The translations under genes were made by a program, and so were the position numbers. Source: Trichoplax adhaerens (lineage: Eukaryota; Animalia; Placozoa). From it: 64,000 nucleotides of DNA. This document shows, piece by piece, positions 1-14,994 of the stretch; position 1 is the stretch's first letter, and every line of letters starts with the position of its first letter. The notes below the pieces were generated by a model. The model had not been told where the DNA came from. It saw nothing but the letters and a program-made list of their open reading frames with translations, and did no database searches. Location of the stretch: assembly GCF_000150275.1 (NCBI RefSeq), contig NW_002060946.1:7608829-7672828 (forward strand). Direction: 5' to 3'.

Positions 1-11
1 TTTATCTTCAG

Positions 12-1914
12 ATTTCGAATCATTTGCAGAGAATCTATTAATAAATACATGGTGGATCCCCTTTGTAGTGCTCTGGTAAATCTTAAAATTTCTGTAATAG
101 ATAAATTCATACCATATAGGCCGTTACATTGCCCAAACTAACATCCATTTCTACTTTTGTATTAGGGAGATGCGAAGAAATTAAAGAACTTAAAGACTGA
201 GGATATCGCTTATTATTCATCTCTTTCCGAAATATTGCTCTTAATAGCTATTGATGACTGGTTTCGTGAACGTCTAGCAAAACAGACAGTTTTATGGTTG
301 GGAATTGGGCATTTGCTTGTAAGCTAGCTATTCCATTGCTAACTACGCCTGTAATGAACCAGTCTACACAATTTTATTCAACTGCCAACATTTGTATTAA
401 CATAACTTTAGAATATAGCTGCAAAAGCCCCAAAAAATGTTGAGAATTTACTCCATGCTATGTTAGGTTTAATGTTAAACCTTTGCGCCCAAGCGTCAGA
501 AAATGCAGCCATTCAGGTTTAATGATAAACAAATAATCATAAAATTTAAATTAGGAGTAGACCAGCTGGCCGAACTAAAATATCTTCATATATTCTTTTC
601 AAGATAGTCTTTCAAATGAACGCCGTTTTATTTGTCGCCTTTATGTCATAACTTCACTCGGATTAACATGACTTTGCGATATTTTTTAGAATTTTTCAAA
701 CGATTTCCTTCCTAGTCTTGTTAACATCTTAACCACGAAAAATGAAGATATTTTCGAAGTACGAGTAAATAACTATATTTGTAAAAGTCCCACTTTTACA
801 AGCAAAATCTGCATTTCATCTCTGTAATCTCTAATAACTAGTTACCTTTTGGCTTAATTACTACGCTGGATTATCTTACTCTCCACATCTAAAATTTTAG
901 CGTTTAACTAGATGCATTGCGCGTCTTATTGGATTTTGTACAAAGAAATCATGGTCCTTAGATTTGTTACCTAAGATCTGCCCAGCAATATTGGTGGTAA
1001 GAAATATCTTAGGTTGATATTTAGAACCGTATATAAACTAAATGAAGTAAATTAAAAAATTAAAGCCTGTCCATTTCTGATGTTTGAGCCTAAACATATG
1101 TATTTCAATGTATATGAATTGATAGAATCGTGGTCGTTCAGTCACACTTAAAGCTTTATCGACATGTCTGGCCTATTGTACAAAAAATGACCAGAAAGCT
1201 GCCATCGAGTTTTTGCTCGACTTCAAAGGTAGTTGAAAATTGTCGTTTTTATTACTCACCACTTATTGATTACATTACTAGCTTAGGCTTTTTAACTAAA
1301 AGATAATATATAAACTGCTTTAATTTTTTACAATTTTTGTAGATTTAGTCACAATCTTTACTATGATGATTAATTCGGATGATGATAGCATTGTTGGTAA
1401 TTCTAGTCTTGCCTGCAGCCACATAATCGGACAAGGTAAAGAGTAATAGATATAAATCACCGTCTGAATATAGTACTGTGCACAATAAGTACCGCACTAG
1501 TTAATTAAATTTTGTCTACTTTTATTTATTGCTATTCTCGAATCTCCTACCGATGGATAGCAAAAATAAGTCAATTATTTATTGGAAGCGATATCGTTGC
1601 TGATTTATTACGGATAGTGGATAGCAGTCGGAAAAATGTTACACGAAAAAATGCTGGGATTGCATTGGCTAAATTAAGCCAAAGCGATGCAAGGTAAGAG
1701 CAAGTTTGTTGATGCTTCTGGATTTTTTGACACCTTATAGCCTATAACAATTCAAGATAATATTAATGATATTTCATAAATGCCAGATTGCACGAATAAA
1801 AACACTAAGCGACAATTACTAATTGTTTTTCATTTAAGGCATCTGGAAAGGCTGCGGGATTTACATGGCGTAGAAATTCTTCACTCAGTTTTAGATTCAT
1901 TTGGAAAAATTTAA
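12..1914 (+). CDS. TTC12: 3' part of a multi-exon TTC12-like TPR/armadillo-repeat gene; the 5' end lies upstream of the window
   Basis: Series of short AG/GT-bounded exons. The last ones translate to DDSIVGNSSLACSH...RKNAGIALAKLSQSDAR|HLERLRDLHGVEILHSVLDSFGKI*, with TAA at 1912-1914. This matches the recalled TTC12 C-terminus (GNAALCL...NAGIALGKL...RKLHGLEIL). AATAAA at 1937-1942. Confidence 0.8.
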
Positions 1915-4900
1915 GCTTTTACAAATTTCTAGATTAAATAAATACTATAGAATAATTGAAAACGCAGAAATTAATAAGCGGTTTCTGTTAGATGAAGTTA
2001 AAGCACCGAGAACACTCCCTTAGACAAGCATTAATTCTACGACTCGACGAAAAGTACTATTTTTTGTACCGTTTCTGATGTATAGACAACAAGCAAACTA
2101 AGCAGTGGTAGTATTAGTTATCGATAACCATGTTCTATAGTAGTAAGTGAAATAAACTATTCTGTAATATTTTATTCGTGTTGAATCCTTATACCTTCAA
2201 ATAAAGTTTACTTTGTGTATTTTAATAACATTTTTTTGCAATCTGAACCGTCCCTGAATAAACCATTTAAGAATGAGAACGGTGTAACTATTTATATCCT
2301 TAAATAATATCAAATGAAATATCAGAAGTCTACACACTGGGCTCCTAAAAAGTAATTGTAAAAACGCCGAACACTTTAACTTTCAGCAGGTGCGGCGCAG
2401 TGTTTCGGTTACATGTTCACTGAAAATCGAGACATGCAAATATCGCTCAAGCCTGAATAAAATCAGACATACAGCGGTTCGAATTAATTGATTATTGTTA
2501 AATTGAGGGGCTTACGGTCAATACCATATTTTATTTATTTATTCCAAAATATTGCGAATACTTATTTATAATGTAAATCGTGATTTATAGAGAGAAACTA
2601 AACTATATGAGCCTTTTGATAGGCTAATCCTCTCGATGATTGCCCATAACGTCACTCAATACTGACGAACATCTATCGTTGGGGCCACGGTAACTGCAAG
2701 TCTCACTTAAACTAAACTTTAAAGTCATATTTACTAAATAATTCATCAATTTATAAACGCATCGTTATGCTATTTAATCTTAATTTATCATTCGGATGTA
2801 ATATTATAAAGTATGCGAGATATCCTAGATATAATCTCTATCGGTGAATTTCTAAGTAAGTTATGTAATGATAGCTTTGCTGCAGCTTCGATACTGAAAA
2901 ATAAAATTGCGATTTTTACCCCTGAGATTCACATTATAGGAAACTATTTTCCGTATGCAATTGCCATATATTTGTATCTAAACTAAATAGAAATTTTATA
3001 AATTCAAATAATCTAATATGTAGAATAAGGATAAGCATATACCGAAGTTCTAGAAAGAAGAAATATTTCAGAAAAACATCCGGTTACTATGTTGCTAAGG
3101 ATATCACTTTAGGAGAGTTTATAATCTGATATCATTATTTTATTATATATGGTAAGCATATTTGGCATATTATAATTTTAAACGCAAAAACTGTATTAGC
3201 TTTTAAATTGCAATCATAGGGTTAGTTATACGTTTTTTTTGCCGTATCGTATTAAGCTATTTTCTTAATCTGGCATCTGTGTGAGCACTGCGGATATCCT
3301 AATCAGTAATAAATACTATACCTTATTAAATTAGAAATTGGATGAGAAACTTAATGAATAATAATTCTTTAAGAGCAATACATCTCACTTAATAATAGCC
3401 AGTTAAGCTTAATGCAGATACGACGGGATAAAACAAAGTTAAAAACACAGGTTATTATTCATTATTATCGAATAGAACATCATAAATTAATTTATTTAAT
3501 CAAAACGCTTTAATATCAATCTGAAATATCAGTTCTAGAGTAAACATAGTGATGACGTTTTTGAATTATTACTAACATATAGGAACATGGCTTCTACTTC
3601 ATTTTGCCGCATAATTCTTCAGTCACCGAACTACCCACATAGACGAATCGAGTTATCTCAAATATATTAATATTACATATTTGTAACTTAAAATACCACA
3701 TACAGCATATGCAGTATGAAATATGTTTCTATAACGTGCATAGATTACAGTGAATCAGCTTAATTGCGGATACAAGCGTTCATAGTTAAATTGAAAGAAT
3801 AGAATAACCTGTCTTGGTTGCTAGTAATTTAAGGAAATAATGTCCTTGTCTAAACTTCATTTCTCTCTGCTAAATTCCGATTATATTACAGTATAAGCTT
3901 TCATTATACGGTATATTCAAGTATGCTACACGATTGTTTACTTTAAGTAAAGTATGCTTTATTTGTATAATTTTAGTGGCGATAAAACAATAATGCAATT
4001 TTTTCAAAAGGCGAAAGAATATTGATGAATCAGTACGAGTATAGCTTAATTTTCTCGCCGTACTAAAAATGGCAGCCCATCACGGTGGTAGCCAACTAGA
4101 AATGTAACTATATGAGCTACTGTTAATAGAACTACCATCAGTTATCTTTCTACCTGGTTTAACTAGATGCAGGAGATTAAATTATACTCCGATTGTAACT
4201 TTACTGATGTAATGCACGATATTACTAAATCAATGACAGACTAAATTGAAATAAGATCTGGTGCAGTTTAATTTTAATCAAATTGCGCGTAATCTCGGTG
4301 AATATTCTAGAAGGTGGATATTGGCTGATTTAAGAGACAGTATTGCATTGGCTGCAAAAAGGTACCTCAATATAGCCAACGTTACTTTGGAAAATGGCAG
4401 CCTTAGCCTAAGCTATTTATTATAAATAAATTTATAGTATGCTTATCAAAATCCTGAAATATAGTTAACAATGTTATTTTACATCTATATCTATTTGCTG
4501 TATTTTCTCTTATTCTGATTTGAAATGAGTTGATTAATACATATTACCGCCGGTTTGCCGTATTGCATCGGTATATAATACTATGGTCATTAACCGTTAT
4601 CACGGTAATGATAGAACGATAAACAACTTCGACAATTTAGATTGACGTAAAAACTGAAATCAAAATCCCTTTCATCAGTGCGACGGCTCCTGTGCTGATA
4701 GCTACTACGGTTACCGTATAATTTTAGAGATTCCCGATCTTATTGAAAATGCTCAGATACTTGTAAATTCTGAATGATTCCGAAATAAAAATAGATCAAA
4801 CCATATCTTAAAGTAATGAAATAATTAATATAAGGTACCGCACTGTTCTGAAATAGCAGATAAAAATACTCGGATGTGCTATGAAGGCAATTCCATTTGT

Positions 4901-5744
4901 CGATTGAAAGATTGGCAAGTATTACTATCGTCAATTCATATAATATTCAGAGCTACGAATTTTATAGTATGAACTTGAATGTTATACATATCAGGTTGTT
5001 ATTGTGCTCAGGCTCGGCGATTTATGAATTAATGATTTCATTTAATTTAGTTTACCTGATTGAGGATTTTACTCGCCGGACCGATCTCTTATACAATAAT
5101 TTATTGCATACGAGTACTATTGGTAATCTCCTGTAATTCGCGTTAATTGCCTTTATCCATAATTGTATGCAAGTTTTTAACGTAATCAAGAATCAAAACT
5201 GTTTTTGTATAGTCGTTCGTTCATTGATTATTCGTTAACAATTATATTATAGTAAGTATACTGACATTGCTTTTATTAATACTTTAATTCATTTGGGTAT
5301 TAGCTAGAACAATCATAGCTTGCTGGACGGTACGTACTTTAACCAATACATTGTTAGAATAAGTTATATTTTTATTTTGTTTAAACGCTAATTTTATCAA
5401 ACGTGAAACTTTGAACTATTTTCAAAGTTATTAGTCCCTATGAGGAAGAACTATATGATAAAAAACTTAGCGGAGGACTGTATAAAGGATGATCATACGA
5501 CCCAATAATGCAAAGTTAGATTTTTAATACTACTAGATAAGTTCCTACGCCGTAAGAATACTAAATTAACTGATCTTTTTCCTTTTAATTTTAGTTAGGG
5601 TTCTTACCAAAATTGAGCCAGAGACATTTACGGGCAATTTTGTTACATGTGTATTACAGCGATTTATTGATACTAAATTTGCTAAGAACTTTTATTTAGA
5701 CTTTAATAACTTAAATTCAAGATCTACTATCTTAATATTTATCT

Positions 5745-7325
5745 ATGGAATCTAAATACGAATTAAATCCCTCTGACCTCCACGTATCAATCAACAGTCT
5801 ACCTGGTTTGATAATTTTACAAAAATCTTCACCCAGTAATAACAATCATCAACAAGGTGTCGTCTACAGGACTCGTTTAATGGCGTATTATTGCAGAAAT
5901 GATTCTTTACCGAGTGTGTGTAAGCTTTATTATAACATTCCTACATTTACTCATACACAGAAAACTAAGCGGAGGCGTACGAGAGACTATAATCGCCATA
6001 CAGATATAATCCGTCGTTTCTTTAATAGTGATAGCGACGCTATCAACTATCCTGTTGGATGTTATTCTGTACGAATATTTGTCGATGATAATCAATCTTG
6101 TTTAATTACTAAAGATCGACGGCGAGATGCATATCATCCTATAGCGTTTCTACGTGATAACAAGCTAATCGGCGGTTTATATGCTAACTTTGATCGTTAT
6201 GTCCATCCGAGCCTAAGTGAAAAAGTTATTTCGATCGATGAAAAACCTATACGATCTATTATTACAGCTGTATGCCTGTATGGTTATAATTTGAAAGGCA
6301 TCGATAACTGCGAAAATCAATATCCGATAACGAGCGCAACTCATAATCTACAACAAGATCAAACTATAGAAAGAATAAAACTGGAATGCGATGAATGGCA
6401 TCCATACGAAAAATTAATTCATCAAACGCTCGAAAATATGGTACCATTTTTTTATGTTATAGGTAAAGGAACTATGCCTACATTATATTTTCATCTTCCG
6501 ATTGCAGAATATATTATAGTCGGATTACAATTATTTCTAACTAATTATATGACCAGAAAAGCTTTCGACGATTATATCGATTATATAACCGAACGTTCCA
6601 GAAAGCATCGTCAATGGTTAGATAATTACTCTTCTCGTTACAATATAACATTGATAACCGAAGCGCCTATTAGTAGATTAGTATTAGAAAGGAACGACGA
6701 ATTTTGTTTACAACGATTTATGGATGGAATCGATGTACCGTTAAGTCTTTTAAATGGCATCGATAAAGAAAGCGGTAACAAAATTGCAGAACATGTTAGT
6801 CAACGATGTTGGATATGGTTATGTGAAAGTCAAGTAGAGCCCTATCGTAGTGTGTGGCGATATATTAAGAGTCAGAAAGATCTTCATTGTAATGAAGAAG
6901 AATTATATAACGGTTATAGCTTGATATCGCTTAAGTATATCAGCTATATCGCTTATTTAGCTTGTGTTAAGCAAATGGAGAAAGTAGGCCAAGTGTTAAT
7001 GGTCCAGCCACTTGATGAAAAACAAGTATCGGTAGCTTATAAAAATTTATTAGGAGATAAATACGGTGGTATATTAGGATTTCATTGGATGGTGCCAATA
7101 GTATCGAATATATCTACGATGGACACTTTATTCACTCTAAAAGACTACTTAGCACCGTTAGATAATCTGATTGAGAACGGTATTATTAAGCAATGTTTCC
7201 TTGAGAGCGGCGCTGCAGCAACAAACTTAGATAAAAATAGTATAGTTTCTTATACAAAGATTAAAGAGCAGTTACTATCGAAACATCGGTATCTTCTTAC
7301 GCAGCAAATTGATTCGATATCTTAA
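5745..7325 (+). CDS. Intronless 526-aa protein of unknown function
   Basis: A 1581-nt stop-free ATG..TAA frame in very AT-rich DNA is far too long for chance. Composition is globular with no obvious TM helices. Basic patch KTKRRRTR at about aa 73-80. No animal domain recognised. Confidence 0.85.
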   Translation: MESKYELNPSDLHVSINSLPGLIILQKSSPSNNNHQQGVVYRTRLMAYYCRNDSLPSVCKLYYNIPTFTHTQKTKRRRTRDYNRHTDIIRRFFNSDSDAINYPVGCYSVRIFVDDNQSCLITKDRRRDAYHPIAFLRDNKLIGGLYANFDRYVHPSLSEKVISIDEKPIRSIITAVCLYGYNLKGIDNCENQYPITSATHNLQQDQTIERIKLECDEWHPYEKLIHQTLENMVPFFYVIGKGTMPTLYFHLPIAEYIIVGLQLFLTNYMTRKAFDDYIDYITERSRKHRQWLDNYSSRYNITLITEAPISRLVLERNDEFCLQRFMDGIDVPLSLLNGIDKESGNKIAEHVSQRCWIWLCESQVEPYRSVWRYIKSQKDLHCNEEELYNGYSLISLKYISYIAYLACVKQMEKVGQVLMVQPLDEKQVSVAYKNLLGDKYGGILGFHWMVPIVSNISTMDTLFTLKDYLAPLDNLIENGIIKQCFLESGAAATNLDKNSIVSYTKIKEQLLSKHRYLLTQQIDSIS

Positions 7326-8967
7326 AAGTAATACCGTTAATCTGTGGATCTTTACATTTTAGACACTGCAGAATTAGTAATATCGAGATTATAGTAGAAA
7401 CATCTATGTTAGAATAATTTTGTTGATTTACCCTTATACGAAGAGTTTCTTATTTAGATATATGATATTTAAATATAGCACTAGCTTTTATGGTGATATA
7501 TACAGCCTACTGAAATTAGTAGTTTAATTAGGGAATCGAGAATAATCTTCTTACAATTCAAATCACTGTGATTGTAATTTACTTATGGTAGATTATCGTA
7601 GAAATGTTCCGTGATAGGAAATATTGTAATCTGACAATTTTGTATTAGTTATTCGATGTCTATCTTGGTAAATACTGTTGTCTTCATTCGGTAGCAGTAG
7701 ATAAAATTAGCTTTTGATTCATTATCAGGCTTCAACGTTAATATTACTAACTAAGATGTCTTTGCTATTGTAAAAGAGTATATAAATGCGATAATCGTAT
7801 AATAAAGTTAGTTCTTGTGATTCGTGTTTAACGTAAGATCCGAGGTGTCTAAGTCATTTTGTAGTCTACTAGTATAGGAAAAGTGCTCCTGAAAGAGTAG
7901 ATATTGTTCCCTGATAAATGATTCAGGGAATCGACTGATTGATCTTGCATTACGTTATTTTGTAGCAAAGCTGTTTTGCAACAGTAATCTTTATCATCTT
8001 CTACACTACTACTAACTTGGATATGGCCAATCAGACGTTGGCACTTGTTACTGTTGCACTTGGATAGTGCACTATACAGAATGTTGACATATAGTATTTC
8101 GAACTCGAGATCATTTTTCCTTTTCTTCTCTCTTACCCTGCCACTCAATTAAAATCTATCTCTCACTGCACCTTGTACGTTAACTCTTAATAAGACTACA
8201 GAGTGTTATTCTTAGACTGAGTTATGGAATGGTAACATTCTTGGCTTGTTTAAATAGTAGTTCGTTGTTCAATTTTCTATGATATATTCCTAGTAATTTT
8301 ACTATGCTTGAACCTGTGGCATAACAACCTGTGATTAATCCGTAGTCTAAAGCATAGAAGTATCGACCCACATGCTGAACGTATTCGAAACAGCTATATC
8401 ACGCATCTTAGTATGGCGAATATAACATTCATATATAATTATAAATTGTAAGATAAACAGTTGCAAGGATTTTAGCAAATTACGGTAGTTACGTGTTACA
8501 TCAATTCAAATCTTTATTTCTCAGAAAAGAATAGCTAATAATAAAATACATTAAGATCCACTTCACTAAACTACTAACTAACTATAATATGTGTTATTGG
8601 GCTTCTAAAAAGAGAAATTTCAGTTTAGAATAGTGATATCAATTATTTATTATCAGTTATACTATCGCGAGATAGTATCAAATAGTTTTAATCCTTGAAC
8701 GATAATGGACAGTATTTCTAACACCAGAGGGCACTTTGCTGCACGCAATCAATAGTACAGCGTACAATTTCTCCATATTATCCTGATAGTATCTTGATAG
8801 ATTAGTATTAATAATTATTATTCTACCGGCAAAAATATAATATGCTCAGGCAGGGAAATTGTGGGTCAGCAAAACAATTTTACTATCAAGTAAACAGCAA
8901 AAGTATACGCGAGGTATAGTATAGGGAGCGAGCGATATACTAGTTATGATAGTATCAGAACTACACT

Positions 8968-9372
8968 TGATATTAGGAAGCATATATTCTAAGATAATCC
9001 TCTAGTTATATTCTGAATGTAACACTTTAAAACTTTATGGAGAATATATTTTCGTTGATTTAGATGGGATATCCAACTAGTATTAAGAAAAAATCTGATA
9101 GTTAACTCTAGTTTAGAAGTCTGATGAGTTGTTCAAGTTCGATGCATTCTGACTAGGTTATACTGTACTGATATTAGGAAGCATATATTCTAAGATAATC
9201 CTCTAGTTATATTCTGAATGTAACACTTTAAAACTTTATGGAGAATATATTTTCGTTGATTTAGATTGGATATCCAACTAGTATTAAGAAAAACTCTGAT
9301 AGTTAACTCTAGTTTAGAAGTCTGATAAGTCGTTCAAGTTCGATGCATTCTGACTAGGTTATACTGTACTGA
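8968..9372. repeat. Near-perfect tandem duplication, 2 x 201 bp
   Basis: TGATATTAGGAAGCATATATTC... starts at 8968 and again at 9169. I count 4 substitutions between the copies. Confidence 0.95.
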
Positions 9373-9588
9373 CGTAAATTGCAGTAAGCGATCAATACTG
9401 TAAGCGTTTATTCTGAGTCCTGATGATTGTACTGTATGGGAAAGACAATCCAGGCGTCCATACGTCTATTACGTACAGTATACAGTACTGTCATACTATA
9501 CTACATGGTACTGTACACTGTGGCAACGTACTGTACTACTTACTATAAAGAAGTTTCATATAGTATGAAGCATACAAAATTAATTTGA

Positions 9589-9602
9589 ACTGCGCATGTG
9601 CG
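9589..9602 (+). promoter_or_regulatory. NRF1-like motif in the putative INTS10 promoter
   Basis: ACTGCGCATGTGCG resembles the NRF1 consensus TGCGCATGCGCA. It lies just before a probable non-coding first exon (donor AG|GTAATT at 9702). Confidence 0.45.
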
Positions 9603-9774
9603 ATGAAGGTTTGCTGATTGTTGCTCGAGCTTAAATGGCAGTCTAGTGATCTGGTCGATAGTGGTGGTTGGAAATAGTTCAGAGTTGATTCTGCTGCTAA
9701 GGTAATTGCCTATTTAGAAGCTCTTTCCATAGATTAAATAGTATCTTACTGTGTTATCGTCTCAACGTAGTGTA

Positions 9775-12700
9775 ATGGAAACGATGGAAGAAGAAGATTG
9801 GCTATGGATGTTAGGCCAAGCTGAGCAAGCACAAGTATCCAACGATATCTATGGAGCTCGATCATGGCTAATTAGTTGTAAATCTTTATTTCCTGATAAC
9901 TTTCAAGTTCAGGTAATAAAGACATGATAATTCAGATAATGATGGAATACCAATTTTACTGATGTTAACTTAGAAATCCAGAGATAGGATACTATAGTCT
10001 ACTATATTCATATATGTATTGATTGTTGATTTATAACGAAAACGCGATATCAACGTTGAACATTAAAGACGTCTAGCTAGGTTAAAGTCGGTAGCGGTTT
10101 ACAGTGTTTACGAAATAGAGAATAAGAACTTTTTAAAATAAAGTGCATTGGGCATGATAGACACTATTCAGTAACATTTATTTGATGTTTGTCTATGTTG
10201 AGCTTGAGTTTGAATAAGGATATTATCGAATTAATGGTGTGCCATGCTGTGGATTCAATCTAATGATTCCTTTTCCTATTGAATTAGCTCTTTGCCTATA
10301 ATTTTGAAAAAAATTGCAAAAAGTACCGCCAAGCTGCAACTGTTTTAACAACGATGTATGTTTGCCATACTCTATCAGCCGTTCCTGTTTATGATAGAAT
10401 ATTTTAGAGTAAAATTGAAACCTATTGAGAAGATGCTATACAACTTGTACAGTATACCTGATTACAACTTAATATGTTTGTTTTATTGTATTACTTAAAT
10501 AATGCCTGGTACTCGTTCAACAGGCTAAATAAATTTACTAGCGAAGACAAGCTATGGCAACTCCTAAGAGACTCCTGCCTTGCCTTATTTGTTGGTAATA
10601 GTGAAGACAATGCAGAATTTGAAGGTGCAGATAAATACACCTATTTAGTGATATTTGAACTTACCGGATAAATTACTGCATCATCAACTATTGTTGCTTT
10701 AAAAGCTACCAGTATTACAGTATGCTTTTGAAGTAATTCCATAATTGACGTATAGTGTCCTGTGTCTTATCGCTATTTCCTTAAATTTTGAATACTTTAT
10801 AAAATGATATATTACTTCTGATAATTCGTGATATCTGGTTATCGTTTTAGAAATACTAAATGAATTTAGCGATGAAGAGAGGTTGGGTTTATTAACTGCT
10901 ACTGCAGGTAAAATAATTTAAAAAGTAATTATATTGGATGAGTTTTAGTTTGCTTCGATGATATGTAAGTTTACTGTAGCGATGCCTATAATTAATTGAA
11001 ATAGTTTCAATATTGCGAATGTAATTCATATTATCCAATTTAGATTCTACACTAGTTCATAGTAGAATTAATGTTACAACTGCCATTTATAATCGAACAG
11101 TATCACACACCTAAAAAATTTTGTCTCTGGGGGTATACTTGTAGACAATAGTCAACAAACTGCTGAAAAATGCAAACTGAAGCTGTTAATACTACGAAAT
11201 TATCCACAGACCATAATAACCCATGGCGTAAGCTCTAAGCATGAATTACGGAATGCATGTATCATTAACTATTTTGATTCTAGCAAAGTATAGGTGCTGT
11301 AATGTGTATGGTATTCATTTACATGAATACTTCGAACTTGCAACAAATTTTAATTAGTAGATATTCATATGGTTGTTAAAATATTTGTAATATCACATTG
11401 TTTACTCCGAAAAATTGAACAGAAAGAGCTAGTGAATACCTTAGAGGATGCATTAAACAACCCAAAAGATGATCGGTACTTAATGGAGTTCGAATCTTTA
11501 CTAGGTACATTATCCCACGCCTTATTTGCATTTTTTAATTTCTAATCTTAACAAACAGATATTATATAAGAAGCTCTTGACGTTACGTAGTATATATTTT
11601 TAAAAAGTCTATTGATAATTAAATGGGTGTGTATGTTAATTTATTACAGCATGCTCCGTTGTTCCTTTGATTTTAAAAAGCGACCGTACATTCTATTCGC
11701 TGACAACCCGGATGAGGTACTGATTAAATATCGCACAGTCAATTTCATTAATTGTCACATTTTTATAGCGACTACTATAAAGAGTAAAGTTGTCTTTAAC
11801 AGTAATTTACCTCTTAGTTTAATTGGAAATTATCACTATTTTTTGAAAGTACGATGCCGATAATATTGTATATCTACCTACGACTTCTCTATACAACTGG
11901 CTGGAATTGTCTATTCGTTACTTTCTGCTCAAAAAACATAGTGGAAACAGTGCGGCGCATTACAAAGATGTTATCGATACTTTGGTGTCTGTCGCATCTA
12001 AAGCAAATTGGGTTAATGATGGAAAGATTGAAGAGTGCTTTATACCATTGCTAAAGGGGTTAGTATCAACTATCATGCTGCCGTGAAATGGTAAATAAAT
12101 AAAAATACGTTTAAATAATATGTCACGTTGTGGTAATTAATCAATTTATAGTGACGTAGAAAAATGCTGGAAATTGCTACAGAACCTCAGTCAATCGGAC
12201 ATAACTAAAGAAGAAGTTTTGTACTCATACTTTGTGTTGTTATGCTATGCTGCATATCATTATAATCTAAATGCGACAGGAGGTTTACAATTTGATCGCC
12301 AAATTTCTAATTGCTGTGATGAAATTGTTGATCGTTTTCTTGATTATAATTCTTCTTTCATGTAGTATTTGAAATAGAAGATAGCGCAAACCTGGCTCTT
12401 GGTTCTGCCAGCAATAATGGATACGTTTTACTGCAATCGGTTTGCGAAGTCACAGCGTCTATAGAGGTGAGCTTTATTTCGCCTTTACTGTTGTATTGTT
12501 TTTAGAACAGAATAACATAAGTTAACATGAAGCTTATCTTAGCAGACATGTAGAAATTAAAGATACTGTTTGATTTATGCTTGAAACAATCGATCGCACT
12601 TACTAATCCGCTTTTATTGCTATTATATTTACGTTCCACAACTTAGGATAGCGATAACGAAGATGTATATATGGAACCGAAACCGCCCGGTAATTTATTC

Positions 12701-14617
12701 TTACAATATCGTGCGGTTATAATATTGCATCTATAATGTAATGGCTATGTTTGCCTAGTAAAGTTCACTGTGTTTGATTTTAATTTTTCCTGAATGTGAT
12801 AATTAAGCGTCTGAACCCCACTTTTATCCATTCTTGACGGTGGCTACTAAATGCTGGAAGGTATTGGCCGACTCCGATTACCGTTCTGGTAAATTTTTTT
12901 ATGATTGTCAGCCACTATTAAAAATTGAAATTCTATTGTCAGCTTATTTCAAATCATGCAAGTCATATTAAGCCCTTTCTGCATGTATTTATTTATTCTT
13001 ATTATTTAGACTTTAGACGAATACGAAAGAGACTACGTTTCGAATATTACTTTACTTCTCTCCGTGTTGATATGCTTATTTACGAAGTAAGAGTAAAAAT
13101 ACTTATTTTGGTACGGTTCGATATGCTATTAATTTCGATAACTTGACTAATCAACGCATACGTTTATATTAAGGGAGAATATGATGGAGCAATAAAATGG
13201 ATTAGTAGTCATTTATCAAAGACGGAATTTGACGAAGAAGATGCTCCACATGTGAGATTGTCGATAATTTTATTATAATCTTATTATCAGTTTTAATAGT
13301 TGACTGATGCATCTTAAGGAGGGGTAGAAATATCCATTTATTTCACTTTCGAATTAACATATACCAACCACTATTCGAAATAATCTTATAATTTACCTCG
13401 TTTGATGTAATAAATCGGATTATTAAACTCTTCTTTACAGTCCGTCATACGTTTCGTGTTACAACTTGCTAGTTGCTTACTTTGCATCAATAAGCATAAG
13501 GTAATTCTAATAATTTACAATTGCTAGATACTATTATAGAGGTACAGACAAATAAGATATATGTATTTAAGTATTATTCAATCTGCAAATATTACAGGAA
13601 GGCTGTAGGAATATTTTAAAATTTATGATGCTGTACGCTCCAGTAAATCACATTCAATCTTCCAGTGGAACAGACATGATTATAGACTTATCAAATGATA
13701 GTAAGTTTAAAGATTTATGAACTGTATCAATAACTTTGCTTCAAATTATGACTGCGTTGTAATCAACTTCTCGTAATTCGCTTGATCTAGGTAATAGTAA
13801 GCGATTTATAAAGTTCATTCCTTACATCGACAGCAATTTAATGAAGTTCTGTATTGAGCATCTACTATATTGTTTGCAGGTATCGTATTATCTGGCATCG
13901 TTATCCTTTCATAATATTTCTAAAAATGATTACATACTTTTCGATTTCGATAGAGAGGAATAACCAGAAGATCTGACGATACGGCCATGGGTCATATCAT
14001 CGTGTTATCGCAATATGACTGGCCAAATTACTCATCTTATTTTGACTTTGTGACTGAAAAAATCCTTGAATCTGGACAATTTACCTATCCATCGTTCTTT
14101 GATTACGTTATAAGTAAGTGATGTTTATGTGTTCCTATATAAGTTACAATAATTTTCAATGGCAGGCCAATATCGGACAATGCAATCTTGCATATCTTAA
14201 TGAACCATTTTGGACAAACATTGTAGATATTGATATTTTGGAAATATTCGCTCATTTTAATTCGACACAAGGGGGAGAAAATGATAAAATTAGGCTATCA
14301 TTGTTGGCTAAAACCTCAAGTTCTACAAGGTGCATCGTAATGTTTAGAAGTATCATTAATAGCTTCAATTTACATTTGAGACTTATAATTAATAACATGC
14401 AGAAATATCGTAATTCATGTGAAAATTTATAATCTAATTCCAAAAATTATGCCTGTTATATAGAACACGTACAGTTACTAGGGGATTAAATAAGGGCGCA
14501 AAGGAAGAGTTTCGCATCGCAATGGAACGCCAAATCCTCAAATGGAATGACTGCGTCAACGAAATTCTCCAAAACTTCTTAACTTCAGAACATCATTCCA
14601 TTCTATCTTGTTTCTAA
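9775..14617 (+). CDS. INTS10: Integrator complex subunit 10 (multi-exon)
   Basis: Exon 9775-9912 gives METMEEEDWLWMLGQAEQAQVSNDIYGARSWLISCKSLFPDNFQVQ (recalled human: [23 protein letters not shown]). Later exons give DDTAMGHIIVLSQYDWP, FFDYVINIDILE and TRTVTRGLNKGAKEEFRIAMERQI (human [20 protein letters not shown]). Stop TAA at 14615-14617, AATAAA at 14790. One junction (11650-11850) is out of frame; see findings. Confidence 0.9.
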
Positions 14618-14994
14618 CGTACGTACTGTTAATGTATCTATCTTCTCCCTTGTGCATATCAATTAATACTAATTAAAATCTGTGAACTTGCTGTAACGTC
14701 AAATTTTTTGAACAGCTTCCGAGATAAAGTACATCTATAACTTATATTGCAGCTTTGAACAAAAAGTTTAAAGTGGTTTATGAAATGTTAATAAATTCTT
14801 ATGCTACAATTCATTAATTTTTGCTAAATAATTCAAGTTACATGTCGAAATGATATTACTGCAAGTAAATCATTACCATATCATTATTGTTATAAGTTCA
14901 ACAAAAGTATACATTCTACTACTGTATGGGTTATCGATATTTGATACAAGAAAAATCTGTTGTGCAGTAGCTACATTAAATTGCTTGAAGCCTA

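Follow-up and report, generated by a model that had tools for sequence, protein, structure and literature searches.

A 526-codon open reading frame (ORF) of Trichoplax adhaerens, located at 5745..7325 of the window (the whole 64,000-nucleotide stretch of DNA analysed here), is most likely a bacterial gene that was acquired horizontally by the placozoan nuclear genome, as judged from comparative sequence analysis. When all lines of evidence are combined, we consider it likely that this bacterial gene has been kept intact and under constraint, and that its product is an enzyme of the aaRS/CDPS fold that would handle an activated aminoacyl group. In this scenario, the gene would have entered the placozoan nuclear genome and would have been kept intron-free between two ordinary spliced host genes. 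The finding adds a well-supported bacteria-to-animal transfer in an early-branching animal, and it exposes a sizeable bacterial family that lacks coverage in Pfam, NCBIfam, PADLOC and the PDB.

An intron-free gene in an ordinary host locus

The long single-exon ORF that an earlier note on this DNA had described is real. It starts with ATG, encodes 526 aa without internal stops and is the sole long ORF in the ORF listing; the runner-up in window positions 1-14000 reaches 99 aa. Two features define the locus:

5745..7325, plus strand: complete intron-free CDS (526 codons plus stop) of a bacterial-type protein with a predicted class-Ic aaRS/CDPS fold, delimited by the ORF, 213 homologs and the ortholog of Trichoplax sp. 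H2
7188..7359, plus strand: unit of about 172 bp that comprises the 3' end of the gene and a 34-bp trailer, single-copy in the H1 window (blastn of H1 against H2, matches to contig C216)

We recognised the TPR and INTS10 genes on either side from individual exons and from the H2 annotation, in agreement with the host-gene flanks proposed earlier. Upstream lies a spliced TPR gene, and INT10 exons were detected by Pfam at window positions 13939-14115 and 14450-14602. The annotation of the collinear H2 region (contig NOWV01000126.1) lists a 693-aa TPR protein, the ORF, INT10 and Mre11, the same order as in the H1 window. The H2 ortholog is identical to the H1 protein in 519 of 526 residues, and contig C216 represents a second haplotype of the locus, apart from which there are no paralogs in the genome. 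Both the H2 allele and C216 carry tandem copies of the 172-bp unit 3' of the stop codon. The GC content of the ORF (0.347) lies in the range of its flanks (0.30-0.35), and the H1 scaffold measures 8.16 Mb. Around the ORF we found no other bacterial gene, no tRNA, no clear polyadenylation signal 3' of the frame and no obvious eukaryotic signals.

Rickettsial symbiont DNA is known to be present in Trichoplax assemblies (PMC3641634), and a close bacterial homolog resides on a Rickettsiales contig, so a symbiont or environmental ORF could in principle have been introduced by contamination or mis-assembly. We regard this as highly improbable. As the earlier note had argued, the flanks are gap-free, and the same host-flanked arrangement is shared by two independent assemblies, H1 and H2, with flanks that are 98-99% identical. 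Moreover, the ORF is embedded in 3.8 kb and 2.4 kb of host-like non-coding DNA with no bacterial gene nearby, a second haplotype exists, and the nearest bacterial homolog has just 35% identity to the Trichoplax protein.

A bacterial protein family without annotation

The protein had been called an orphan, a view that did not hold. An exhaustive HMMER search retrieved 213 relatives (15 at E<=1e-30), and at 50% identity the family forms more than 200 clusters. Members measure about 470-600 aa, and the Trichoplax protein and its bacterial homologs align end to end, starting at Met1. A minority of the 213 homologs carry taxonomic labels, and further eukaryotic members may be among the others. All contigs with interpretable context are bacterial, save one AT-rich, gene-poor set that looks placozoan; among the relatives, most of them unlabelled, only P0003 and P0007, on placozoan-like contigs, look non-bacterial. 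Contigs of the nearest homologs are plainly bacterial: they carry an ATP-synthase operon or a dsr cluster, or belong to the genomes of Azotobacter and Aquabacterium. The family was present in 11 of 401 genomes evenly drawn from one proteobacterial class, and genomes with family members also carry normal TyrRS and TrpRS genes. The cassette is strikingly AT-rich within GC-rich bacterial genomes, which suggests that it is laterally mobile and fits a jump into an animal.

The sequence blocks that the earlier note had singled out (IITAVCLYG, HPYE, YFHLPIAEYIIVG and QPLDEKQVSVAY) are present and fall on the most conserved columns of the family. Likewise, the bacterial motifs given there (ITAVG / YHLPYxDY / LPLSEKQ) match the family consensus FVTAGCxFG / YHLPxxDYILxG / LPxxEKQIQxxY. 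The suggested link to Legionellales, on the other hand, found no counterpart: named family members come from Azotobacter, Aquabacterium and Litoribrevibacter, and one near copy lies on the Rickettsiales contig.

No Pfam match was obtained for the Trichoplax protein or 60 family members, and NCBIfam, PADLOC, PHROG, and PDB sequence and profile searches gave no matches for the members tested. A Pfam match of the Trichoplax protein to GH123 was sub-threshold (E 0.046) and was dismissed. The ESM Atlas returned nothing for the animal protein or one Azotobacter member. A word-indexed homolog search with a single sequence or the 50-sequence alignment recovered the query itself, which reflects a limit of sensitivity and not absence. 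Locus searches of GTDB genomes (based on P0005) and of JGI metagenomes (based on P0003) yielded nothing. A transposon or viral ORF family, considered in the earlier note as another source of the gene, was not encountered. There were no tblastn matches to plasmids or phages and no PHROG or PADLOC family; the ORF is not flanked by a convincing TIR or LTR, and the genome has no paralogs beyond C216.

Phylogeny and presumed donor

In an unrooted, site-heterogeneous maximum-likelihood tree (LG+C20), Trichoplax and P0003 group together (100/100) within a clade that also holds P0004, P0005 and P0006 (99/99); at the next level, this clade falls within a group with Azotobacter, Aquabacterium and P0010 (99/97). 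The LG+G4 tree agrees with this nesting. Provided that the root lies off the placozoan stem, the Trichoplax sequence is nested two levels deep among bacterial sequences, a pattern that the earlier note had tied to transfer. Host synteny, the 213 homologs and the nested tree together lend good support to the horizontal acquisition of a bacterial-like gene proposed there.

Vertical inheritance of an ancient eukaryotic gene that was lost from almost all other eukaryotes would require very many independent losses. Nothing speaks directly for such a history, apart from the fact that most homologs are unlabelled. We consider it very improbable, as all interpretable contigs are bacterial, the gene lacks introns and, in the unrooted tree, the sequence is nested among proteobacterial ones.

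The horizontally acquired gene probably came from an AT-rich bacterium that may have been intracellular. Of the three bacterial copies closest to Trichoplax, one is found on a Rickettsiales contig, and AtpD on the P0005 contig shares 89-91% identity with Rickettsiaceae and Ca. Megaera. Rickettsiales is the order of known placozoan endosymbionts, and the intracellular-bacterium route suggested previously is plausible.

The closest relative, P0003, has an intact 526-codon frame like Trichoplax, and the DNA of both has about 33% GC. Its contigs are probably placozoan, as suggested by their AT content, by flanks poor in ORFs and by a single shared element of 90 bp. An apparent similarity of the L004 upstream region to Trichoplax proved to be AT-rich low-complexity sequence. 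In the probable second placozoan-like organism, extra copies of the gene are decaying; in L046/L047, part of the interior is deleted and the reading frame has changed.

Coding constraint

Coding constraint on the gene is visible, with dN/dS values of about 0.2-0.34. The H1-H2 comparison gives a dN/dS of 0.20, derived from just 16 substitutions, and a divergence of 1.0% in the gene that is not clearly lower than the 0.6-2% of the flanks. Between Trichoplax and P0003, which differ at about 36% of nucleotides, dN is 0.45 and dS is 1.34 (saturated), corresponding to an omega of about 0.34 or less; the identities at codon positions 1, 2 and 3 are 0.58, 0.72 and 0.51. The Trichoplax protein retains 24 of the 31 positions that are at least 80% conserved (27 by similarity), including all core residues. 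Both GC and GC3 of the gene match the host DNA, which indicates long residence in the genome.

One might argue that the gene was acquired from a bacterium but has no function and persists as neutral cargo that has not yet decayed. Such a fate would be in line with the lack of introns and of obvious eukaryotic signals, with the absence of the bacterial partner gene (see below) from the animal, with the decaying copy in L046/L047 and with the unremarkable H1-H2 divergence. Yet it appears quite unlikely, because Trichoplax and P0003 have both maintained open frames of 526 codons despite their divergence. Furthermore, the second codon position is more conserved than the first and the first more than the third, omega is low, the conserved core is retained and the base composition points to long residence. 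Retention of the bacterial gene under constraint is the reading that we prefer.

Predicted fold and conserved residues

An AF2 model built from a 50-sequence MSA reached a pLDDT of 89.7 and a pTM of 0.91 (single-sequence pLDDT, 35). The model shows a Rossmann-type catalytic domain, in keeping with the alpha/beta catalytic-type fold that the earlier note had surmised, and a class-I topology is predicted for it. The protein can be divided as follows:

5745..6239, plus strand: N-terminal beta-rich part with a long basic helix, aa 1-165 (AF2 strands 14-49 and 99-152, helix 72-92)
5958..6020, plus strand: basic helix, aa 72-92, including KTKRRRTR; candidate nucleic-acid-binding surface (helix in the AF2 model)
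6240..7109, plus strand: predicted Rossmann/HUP catalytic-type domain with large insertions, aa ~166-455 (VIA-align Z 8-11.6, conservation table)
6273..6275, plus strand: codon of Cys177, candidate catalytic nucleophile (98% conserved, two residues past the first Rossmann strand, 169-175)
7110..7322, plus strand: C-terminal helical region, aa 456-526 (AF2 helices 459-525)

A VIA-align comparison of the predicted model with 48,161 chains placed TyrRS, TrpRS and CDPS at the top (Z 10-11.6). In a second look, 86 chains scored Z>=8, and all 50 listed belong to these three groups. CDPS chains also head the Foldseek list, with a weak E of 0.05, and MshC was among the VIA-align matches (Z 6.7). Many structural alignments to TyrRS, TrpRS and CDPS start at residues 165-170 and end at 449-453; 200-278 residues are aligned to TyrRS/TrpRS. 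The N-terminal region is conserved across the bacterial family and lies partly inside TrpRS/TyrRS structural alignments that start at model residues 16-110, whereas the C-terminal region is covered by TyrRS alignments up to model residues 513-526. The proposed link of the family to aaRS and CDPS is structural, sequence and profile searches having been empty.

Near-invariant residues of the Rossmann domain are C177, G180, I208, E222, H250, P252, Y256, A273, W371, E425, K426 and Y432. The first Rossmann strand ends in a conserved T174-x-x-C177, and the segment past the last strand reads P-x-x-E-K-Q. Going by secondary-structure register alone, Cys177 may correspond to the catalytic Ser of CDPS, enzymes that also have conserved Tyr/Glu/Tyr pocket residues; E425, Y256 and Y432 are conserved in the family. 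The basic helix (aa 72-92) is a candidate nucleic-acid-binding surface. In 50 family members, K+R make up 22% of aa 68-95 vs 11.5% of the whole protein, and among the closest bacterial homologs this stretch carries a net charge of +5 to +10. Since the KTKRRRTR patch, formerly read as a possible NLS, is kept in bacterial homologs, it is a family feature rather than a eukaryotic addition.

Bacterial gene neighbours and proposed function

In the two bacterial clades nearest to Trichoplax, a gene resembling hydantoin/allantoin racemases usually comes next after the family gene. This Asp_Glu_race gene is the immediate downstream neighbour in six contexts, drawn from two clades; its product has two invariant Cys residues and the allantoin/hydantoin racemase 3QVJ as its best PDB match. 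One locus additionally encodes a further racemase, a PF06032 (S-methyl-thiohydantoin-desulfurase family) protein and a TonB-dependent receptor. The family gene of a distant clade adjoins PAS sensor kinase genes, and that of Aquabacterium a gene for a RiPP-modifying enzyme. Recurring partners are of three kinds: an epimerase resembling hydantoin racemases, a PAS sensor kinase and a RiPP enzyme. Near the Trichoplax ORF there is no racemase remnant, and no PF01177 gene occurs anywhere in the Trichoplax genome. The animal and some bacterial members lack the partner, so the chemistry of the animal protein may differ.

From the predicted fold and these neighbours, we infer that the family protein may be a small-molecule aminoacyl or cyclic-amide synthase. 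Such an enzyme would act on an activated aminoacyl group; its substrate could be aminoacyl-tRNA, as for CDPS, which make a 2,5-diketopiperazine from two aminoacyl-tRNAs, with the conserved basic helix as RNA-binding surface. Cys177 would be the nucleophile that takes up the acyl group, and E425, Y256 and Y432 would act in acid/base catalysis or line the pocket. The product might be a small amide or a cyclic amide resembling a diketopiperazine or hydantoin, and in bacteria the downstream racemase-like enzyme would epimerise either the product or the substrate. The animal would have retained the synthase-like gene alone. Taken together, the fold, the missing ATP motifs (see below) and the partners make the family a concrete target in the search for novel chemistry of aminoacyl groups or cyclic amides.

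In the classical hydantoinase process, a racemase feeds the correct enantiomer to the enzyme, and by analogy the family could have a catabolic role, the stereospecific opening or conversion of hydantoin- or diketopiperazine-like cyclic amides, with the racemase supplying the enantiomer. Trichoplax would then digest cyclic amides of its bacterial or algal diet with the enzyme alone. The partner's resemblance to hydantoin/allantoin racemases and the locus that adds another racemase, PF06032 and a TonB-dependent receptor agree with this proposal, although the PF06032 neighbour fits a synthetic role just as well. However, the top structural matches were to synthetases and synthases rather than to hydrolases, and we know of no cyclic-amide hydrolase with a class-Ic aaRS/CDPS fold. 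The sensor kinases of the distant clade and the RiPP enzyme of Aquabacterium would also better fit signal or natural-product synthesis. Hence, we deem catabolism unlikely.

Alternatively, the protein could be a conventional adenylating ligase that depends on ATP, an aaRS paralog comparable to MshC or GluQRS whose nucleotide-binding motif has diverged. It would couple an amino acid, which might be a D-amino acid made by the racemase, to a tRNA, a protein or a small molecule. This idea is unlikely but tenable, since TyrRS/TrpRS lead in both Z and coverage, MshC is among the matches and T174-x-x-C177 is, in our view, reminiscent of TxGH/TIGN-type variants. It is weakened by the absence of HIGH from all 50 family sequences and of a KMSKS-like pattern from 49 of 50, by a partner closer to hydantoin/allantoin than to amino-acid racemases, and by the tighter superposition of CDPS (rmsd 3.3-3.5 A over ~185 of ~215 residues).

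Going beyond the preferred synthase function, one may speculate about a further class of such enzymes. Aminoacyl-tRNA-dependent synthases have been described in two classes, bacterial CDPSs and fungal RCDPSs. The family could represent a third class of aminoacyl-tRNA-dependent small-molecule synthases, operating through a Cys thioester and either convergent-looking or very distant, that was captured from a Rickettsiales-type intracellular bacterium, a proposal that we regard as doubtful. If true, placozoans would themselves make a cyclic dipeptide of bacterial style or a related amide, for example as a signal to, or as control over, endosymbionts or prey microbes.

Comparison with known systems

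Earlier bacteria-to-Trichoplax transfers comprise BPL_N (two), DapF, MurA, RsmE, PhrB (four), GNAT (two) and MhpC (PMC3641634, Driscoll et al. 2013). Like the gene described here, these are intron-free bacterial-type genes on a large eukaryotic scaffold, and several have rickettsial affinities (PMC3641634). The 526-aa ORF is not on that list (PMC3641634); belonging to a family without annotation, it was not recognisable by name or by similarity searches of that time.

TyrRS and TrpRS (PF00579) share the top Z scores of 10-11.6 with the model, of which residues ~101-521 match residues 1-319 of TyrRS (up to 264-278 aligned residues); TrpRS alignments span model residues 16-523. In contrast to these enzymes, the HIGH motif (H[ILVMA]GH) occurs in none of the 50 family sequences, with no equivalent conserved motif in the conservation table, and a KMSKS-like pattern occurs in a single one. 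In hhalign, the family profile matched the TyrRS profile with a probability of 0.15%, neither Pfam nor PDB sequence and profile searches gave a match, and an anticodon-binding domain was not recognised.

CDPS (PF16715) yielded the tightest superpositions of the matched families, with Z 9.8-10.6 and rmsd 3.3-3.6 A over ~178-196 residues of ~215-230-residue chains (about 85%). The matched chains were 2x9q, 6ez3, 3s7t, 3oqh, 4q24, 9j61 and 6ztu, among which 4Q24 is AlbC, 3OQH YvmC and 2X9Q Rv2275. Family and CDPS both lack HIGH and KMSKS, and both may have a small nucleophile past the first strand, Cys in the family vs Ser in CDPS, according to the inferred register. Unlike CDPS, however, the family is more than twice as large (about 470-600 vs about 220-250 aa) and adds the N-terminal beta-rich domain, the basic helix, large insertions and the C-terminal helical region. 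There is no sequence or profile similarity (PF16715: 0 matches in the query and 60 members), and CDPS genes were too rare in the 401 sampled genomes for building a profile. The pairing with an Asp/Glu-racemase-family gene in bacteria has a parallel in the nocardioazine CDPS pathway, where NozR, an Asp/Glu-racemase homolog, epimerises CDPS-made diketopiperazines (PMC10156859).

The genetic arrangement of the family also resembles a system from another context. Together, EpmA (PoxA), an aaRS paralog, and EpmB, an amino-acid isomerase, form a pair that acts on EF-P. While EpmA is a class II enzyme and EpmB a radical-SAM aminomutase, unlike the family and its partner, the logic is similar in both systems: a synthetase-fold enzyme is encoded beside an isomerase of its amino-acid-derived substrate.

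An intact gene integrated among host genes

The gene is real, intact and integrated in the host genome, and it is common to two Trichoplax species, T. adhaerens (H1) and Trichoplax sp. H2. In the T. adhaerens source assembly (105.6 Mb, 1414 contigs) it forms, as the earlier note had described, one long single-exon ORF between host genes; the runner-up ORF within the first 14 kb of the window measures 99 aa. Both the spliced neighbours and the host nature of the flanks are confirmed by Pfam INT10 exons and by the H2 annotation, which was transferred from the collinear contig for the TPR protein, INTS10 and Mre11. Positions in the window are:

~1,900: approximate end of a 693-aa TPR protein (H2 annotation)
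5745-7325, + strand: intron-free gene, ATG start, 526 aa, the sole long ORF in the ORF listing
~9,785-14,625: INTS10 (H2 annotation)
13939-14115 and 14450-14602: Pfam INT10 exons of the spliced host neighbour
beyond INTS10: Mre11 (H2 annotation)

With a GC content of 0.347 (GC3 0.278) against 0.30-0.35 in the flanks, the composition of the gene is host-like, and around the ORF we found no convincing terminal repeats, tRNAs or transposon features. In the intergenic stretch towards INTS10, a 201-bp unit is tandemly duplicated in perfect register (8968-9369, copies 98% identical).

H1 and H2 share the arrangement at this locus, with flanks that are 98-99.4% identical. Bacterial contamination, already considered unlikely, is thereby effectively excluded. 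C216, a 1,150-bp contig of the H1 assembly (L002, 1-1150), is 99.9% identical to the H2 allele (L003:11133-12279), compared with just 96-98% for the H1 main scaffold (window 6877-7678). The H1 assembly therefore includes, at this locus, a second haplotype resembling that of H2. A ~172-bp segment made up of the gene's end and its trailer (window 7188-7359) is single-copy on the H1 main scaffold; in the H2 allele (L003:11618-12436) and C216 it forms a tandem repeat downstream of the stop codon, the extra copies being degenerate and one containing in-frame TAG stops. The gene is not among the 12 LGT candidates published for Trichoplax (PMC3641634).

Homologues and phylogenetic position

Pfam, NCBIfam, PDB sequences, the ESM Atlas and a word-indexed protein search yielded no relatives other than the protein itself, whose 90% cluster includes RDD39669.1 of Trichoplax sp. 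H2 (519/526 identical). An exhaustive phmmer search against 1.84 billion cluster representatives revealed 213 proteins at E<=1e-3, 87 of them at E<=1e-10 and 15 at E<=1e-30, so that the protein can no longer be called an orphan. The best homologues are P0003 (46% identity, also 526 aa), P0004 (36%), P0005 (35%) and P0006 (30%). Aligning end to end from Met1, the Trichoplax protein is a full-length homologue of a bacterial family. The family consensus (FVTAGCxFG, HPYE, YHLPxxDYILxG, an invariant Trp and LPxxEKQIQxxY) is the bacterial motif pattern that the earlier note had pointed to. Of 31 positions conserved to at least 80% across the 48 remaining aligned sequences, 24 keep their residue in Trichoplax (27 with conservative changes), including C177, G180, I208, E222, P252, Y256, A273, W371, E425, K426 and Y432. 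The family matched no defence-system or phage family.

Two unrooted trees (36 rows, LG+G4; 23 rows, LG+C20 PMSF) agree on the nesting of the Trichoplax clade. Trichoplax and P0003 group together with support of 100/100, within a group comprising P0004, P0005 and P0006 (99/99), which in turn falls within one containing Azotobacter P0008, Aquabacterium and P0010 (99/97); the remaining bacterial clades lie outside. Trichoplax is thus nested among bacteria, assuming that the placozoan stem does not carry the root. This assumption is reasonable, since the family is broad in bacteria and has a single narrow eukaryote-like clade. From a phylogenetic perspective, the trees argue for the proposed horizontal acquisition.

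Codon comparisons point to detectable coding constraint. The H1 and H2 genes differ by 8 synonymous and 8 non-synonymous changes (dN/dS 0.20, low power); between Trichoplax and P0003, dN is 0.45 and dS 1.34, which is saturating and makes the omega of 0.34 an upper estimate. Identity at the three codon positions is 0.58/0.72/0.51, and the 526-codon frame is intact in both.

The P0003 contigs (L004, L005) have 31% GC and are ORF-poor. In their flanks, a complex 90-bp element (L004:3996-4085) has counterparts at four nuclear loci of Trichoplax, with 87-89% identity. There, a ~150-bp non-low-complexity element occurs in four copies, 92-93% identical:

C1413:3545135-3545285
C1410:7368889-7369037
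C1410:7818286-7818434
C1414:5667875-5668009

Comparison of the shared element with tRNAs and Rfam gave no match, so it could represent either a short interspersed repeat or a gene for a placozoan small RNA. The organism carrying P0003 has at least two further gene copies: a degraded paralog from the same samples (L046:72-1075/L047), with ~aa 197-283 missing and a frame change, and a partial copy at the end of L004 (L004:4885-5045), which sits in inverted, tail-to-tail orientation 1.4 kb downstream of the intact copy. From copy behaviour and composition we infer, short of proof, that this genome is eukaryotic and probably placozoan.

Bacterial carriers and gene partners

Plainly bacterial contigs carry P0005 (ATP-synthase operon), P0006 (dsr sulfur-oxidation cluster), P0008 (Azotobacter chroococcum genome), and P0011, P0014 and P0021 (other dense operons). 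Named members are A. chroococcum, an Aquabacterium MAG and Litoribrevibacter albus. The distribution is patchy, as 11 of 401 genomes drawn evenly across Aquabacterium's GTDB class carry the family. The ATP synthase beta subunit encoded on the P0005 contig shares 89-91% identity with Candidatus Megaera and with MAGs of Rickettsiaceae/Rickettsiales; therefore, one of the three closest bacterial copies is in Rickettsiales, an order with known placozoan endosymbionts (PMC3641634).

An Asp_Glu_race-family gene follows within a few to ~170 bp in six contexts (P0004, P0005, P0006, P0008, P0011, P0014), all belonging to the two clades closest to Trichoplax. The pair has a GC content of 39-41% versus 63-74% in Azotobacter, and 40-44% versus ~60% in the dsr contig. 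Such a strongly AT-rich two-gene cassette in GC-rich hosts is a signature of lateral mobility, and the cassette seems to have moved between bacteria recently and more than once, starting from an AT-rich source. Plasmid and phage searches found no copy. The donor was probably a bacterium with this cassette; an intracellular one of Rickettsiales type is an attractive but unproven candidate, and none of the members that could be named supports the Legionellales link suggested earlier. The Trichoplax genome contains no PF01177 gene, nor does a racemase remnant adjoin the ORF. At three loci (L010:8001-10399 of A. chroococcum, L008:600-2708, L009:2133-4153) cassette GC is 37-44% and that of surrounding host genes 51-74%.

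The best solved relatives of the partner are allantoin/hydantoin racemases (3QVJ, E 4e-15), and it has two invariant cysteines, in DMDMCG and VFGCSGF, at dyad-like spacing. At L048:6686-9667, two Asp_Glu_race genes flank a PF06032 (S-methyl-thiohydantoin desulfurase-like) gene with an adjoining TonB-dependent receptor, a hydantoin-type metabolic context for the family. A rival reading is that the protein is catabolic, acting on cyclic amides.

Downstream of the Aquabacterium copy lies the gene for a RiPP precursor-modifying enzyme of the MbnB/TglH/ChrH type (L011:6596-7783, + strand, PF05114, E 2e-66). In a distant clade, a PAS-HisKA-HATPase_c sensor histidine kinase follows the gene in place of a racemase:

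L013:1-1485, - strand
L017:2-751, - strand
L020:1-1146, - strand
L021:2981-4213, + strand
P0021 contig

This consistent neighbour suggests a pairing of signal synthase and sensor.

Predicted fold and proposed function

AlphaFold2 with a 50-sequence alignment gave a model with pLDDT 89.7 and pTM 0.91. Foldseek matches were weak (best E 0.05), led by cyclodipeptide synthases (CDPSs), TyrRS and isonitrile synthases. In a VIA-align comparison with 48,161 representative chains, TyrRS, TrpRS and CDPS scored Z 10-11, ahead of other class-I aaRS and of universal stress proteins; in a second look, 86 chains reached Z>=8, and 50 of the 50 matches listed were TyrRS, TrpRS or CDPS. TyrRS alignments cover model residues ~101-521, and CDPS superposes at an rmsd of 3.3-3.5 A over ~85% of its chain length. 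The enzyme-like alpha/beta fold anticipated earlier is thus predicted to be class-Ic aaRS/CDPS-like.

At the sequence level, hhalign against the TyrRS profile detected no link (probability 0.15%). HIGH occurs in 0/50 family sequences and a KMSKS-like motif in 1/50. Therefore, the family belongs to neither PF00579 nor PF16715 and, on the predicted model, is a distinct family on this fold. CDPSs and the family alike are without ATP signatures. A conventional adenylating ligase would be a further rival function.

The KTKRRRTR patch lies within a helix (aa 72-92) that is basic family-wide (K+R 22% versus 11.5% overall), its net charge ranging from +5 to +10 in the closest bacterial homologues. Since bacterial members share this helix, a nucleic-acid-binding surface would suit it better than a eukaryotic targeting signal, and the NLS assignment falls. 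Of the earlier interpretation, horizontal transfer and the enzyme-like fold stand; 'orphan', 'NLS' and 'Legionellales' do not.

We propose that the protein would act as an enzyme on an activated aminoacyl substrate, aminoacyl-tRNA being likelier than ATP plus amino acid, with Cys177 as putative nucleophile. A small amide, perhaps cyclic and of a type that the partner racemase epimerises, may be its product or substrate. A published precedent for such synthase-plus-racemase logic is the pathway of NozR, an Asp/Glu-racemase homolog modelled on 3QVJ, which epimerises CDPS-made diketopiperazines via a Cys/Cys dyad (PMC10156859). Bacteria-to-animal transfer and the aaRS/CDPS fold are known kinds; what is new is the family on that fold.
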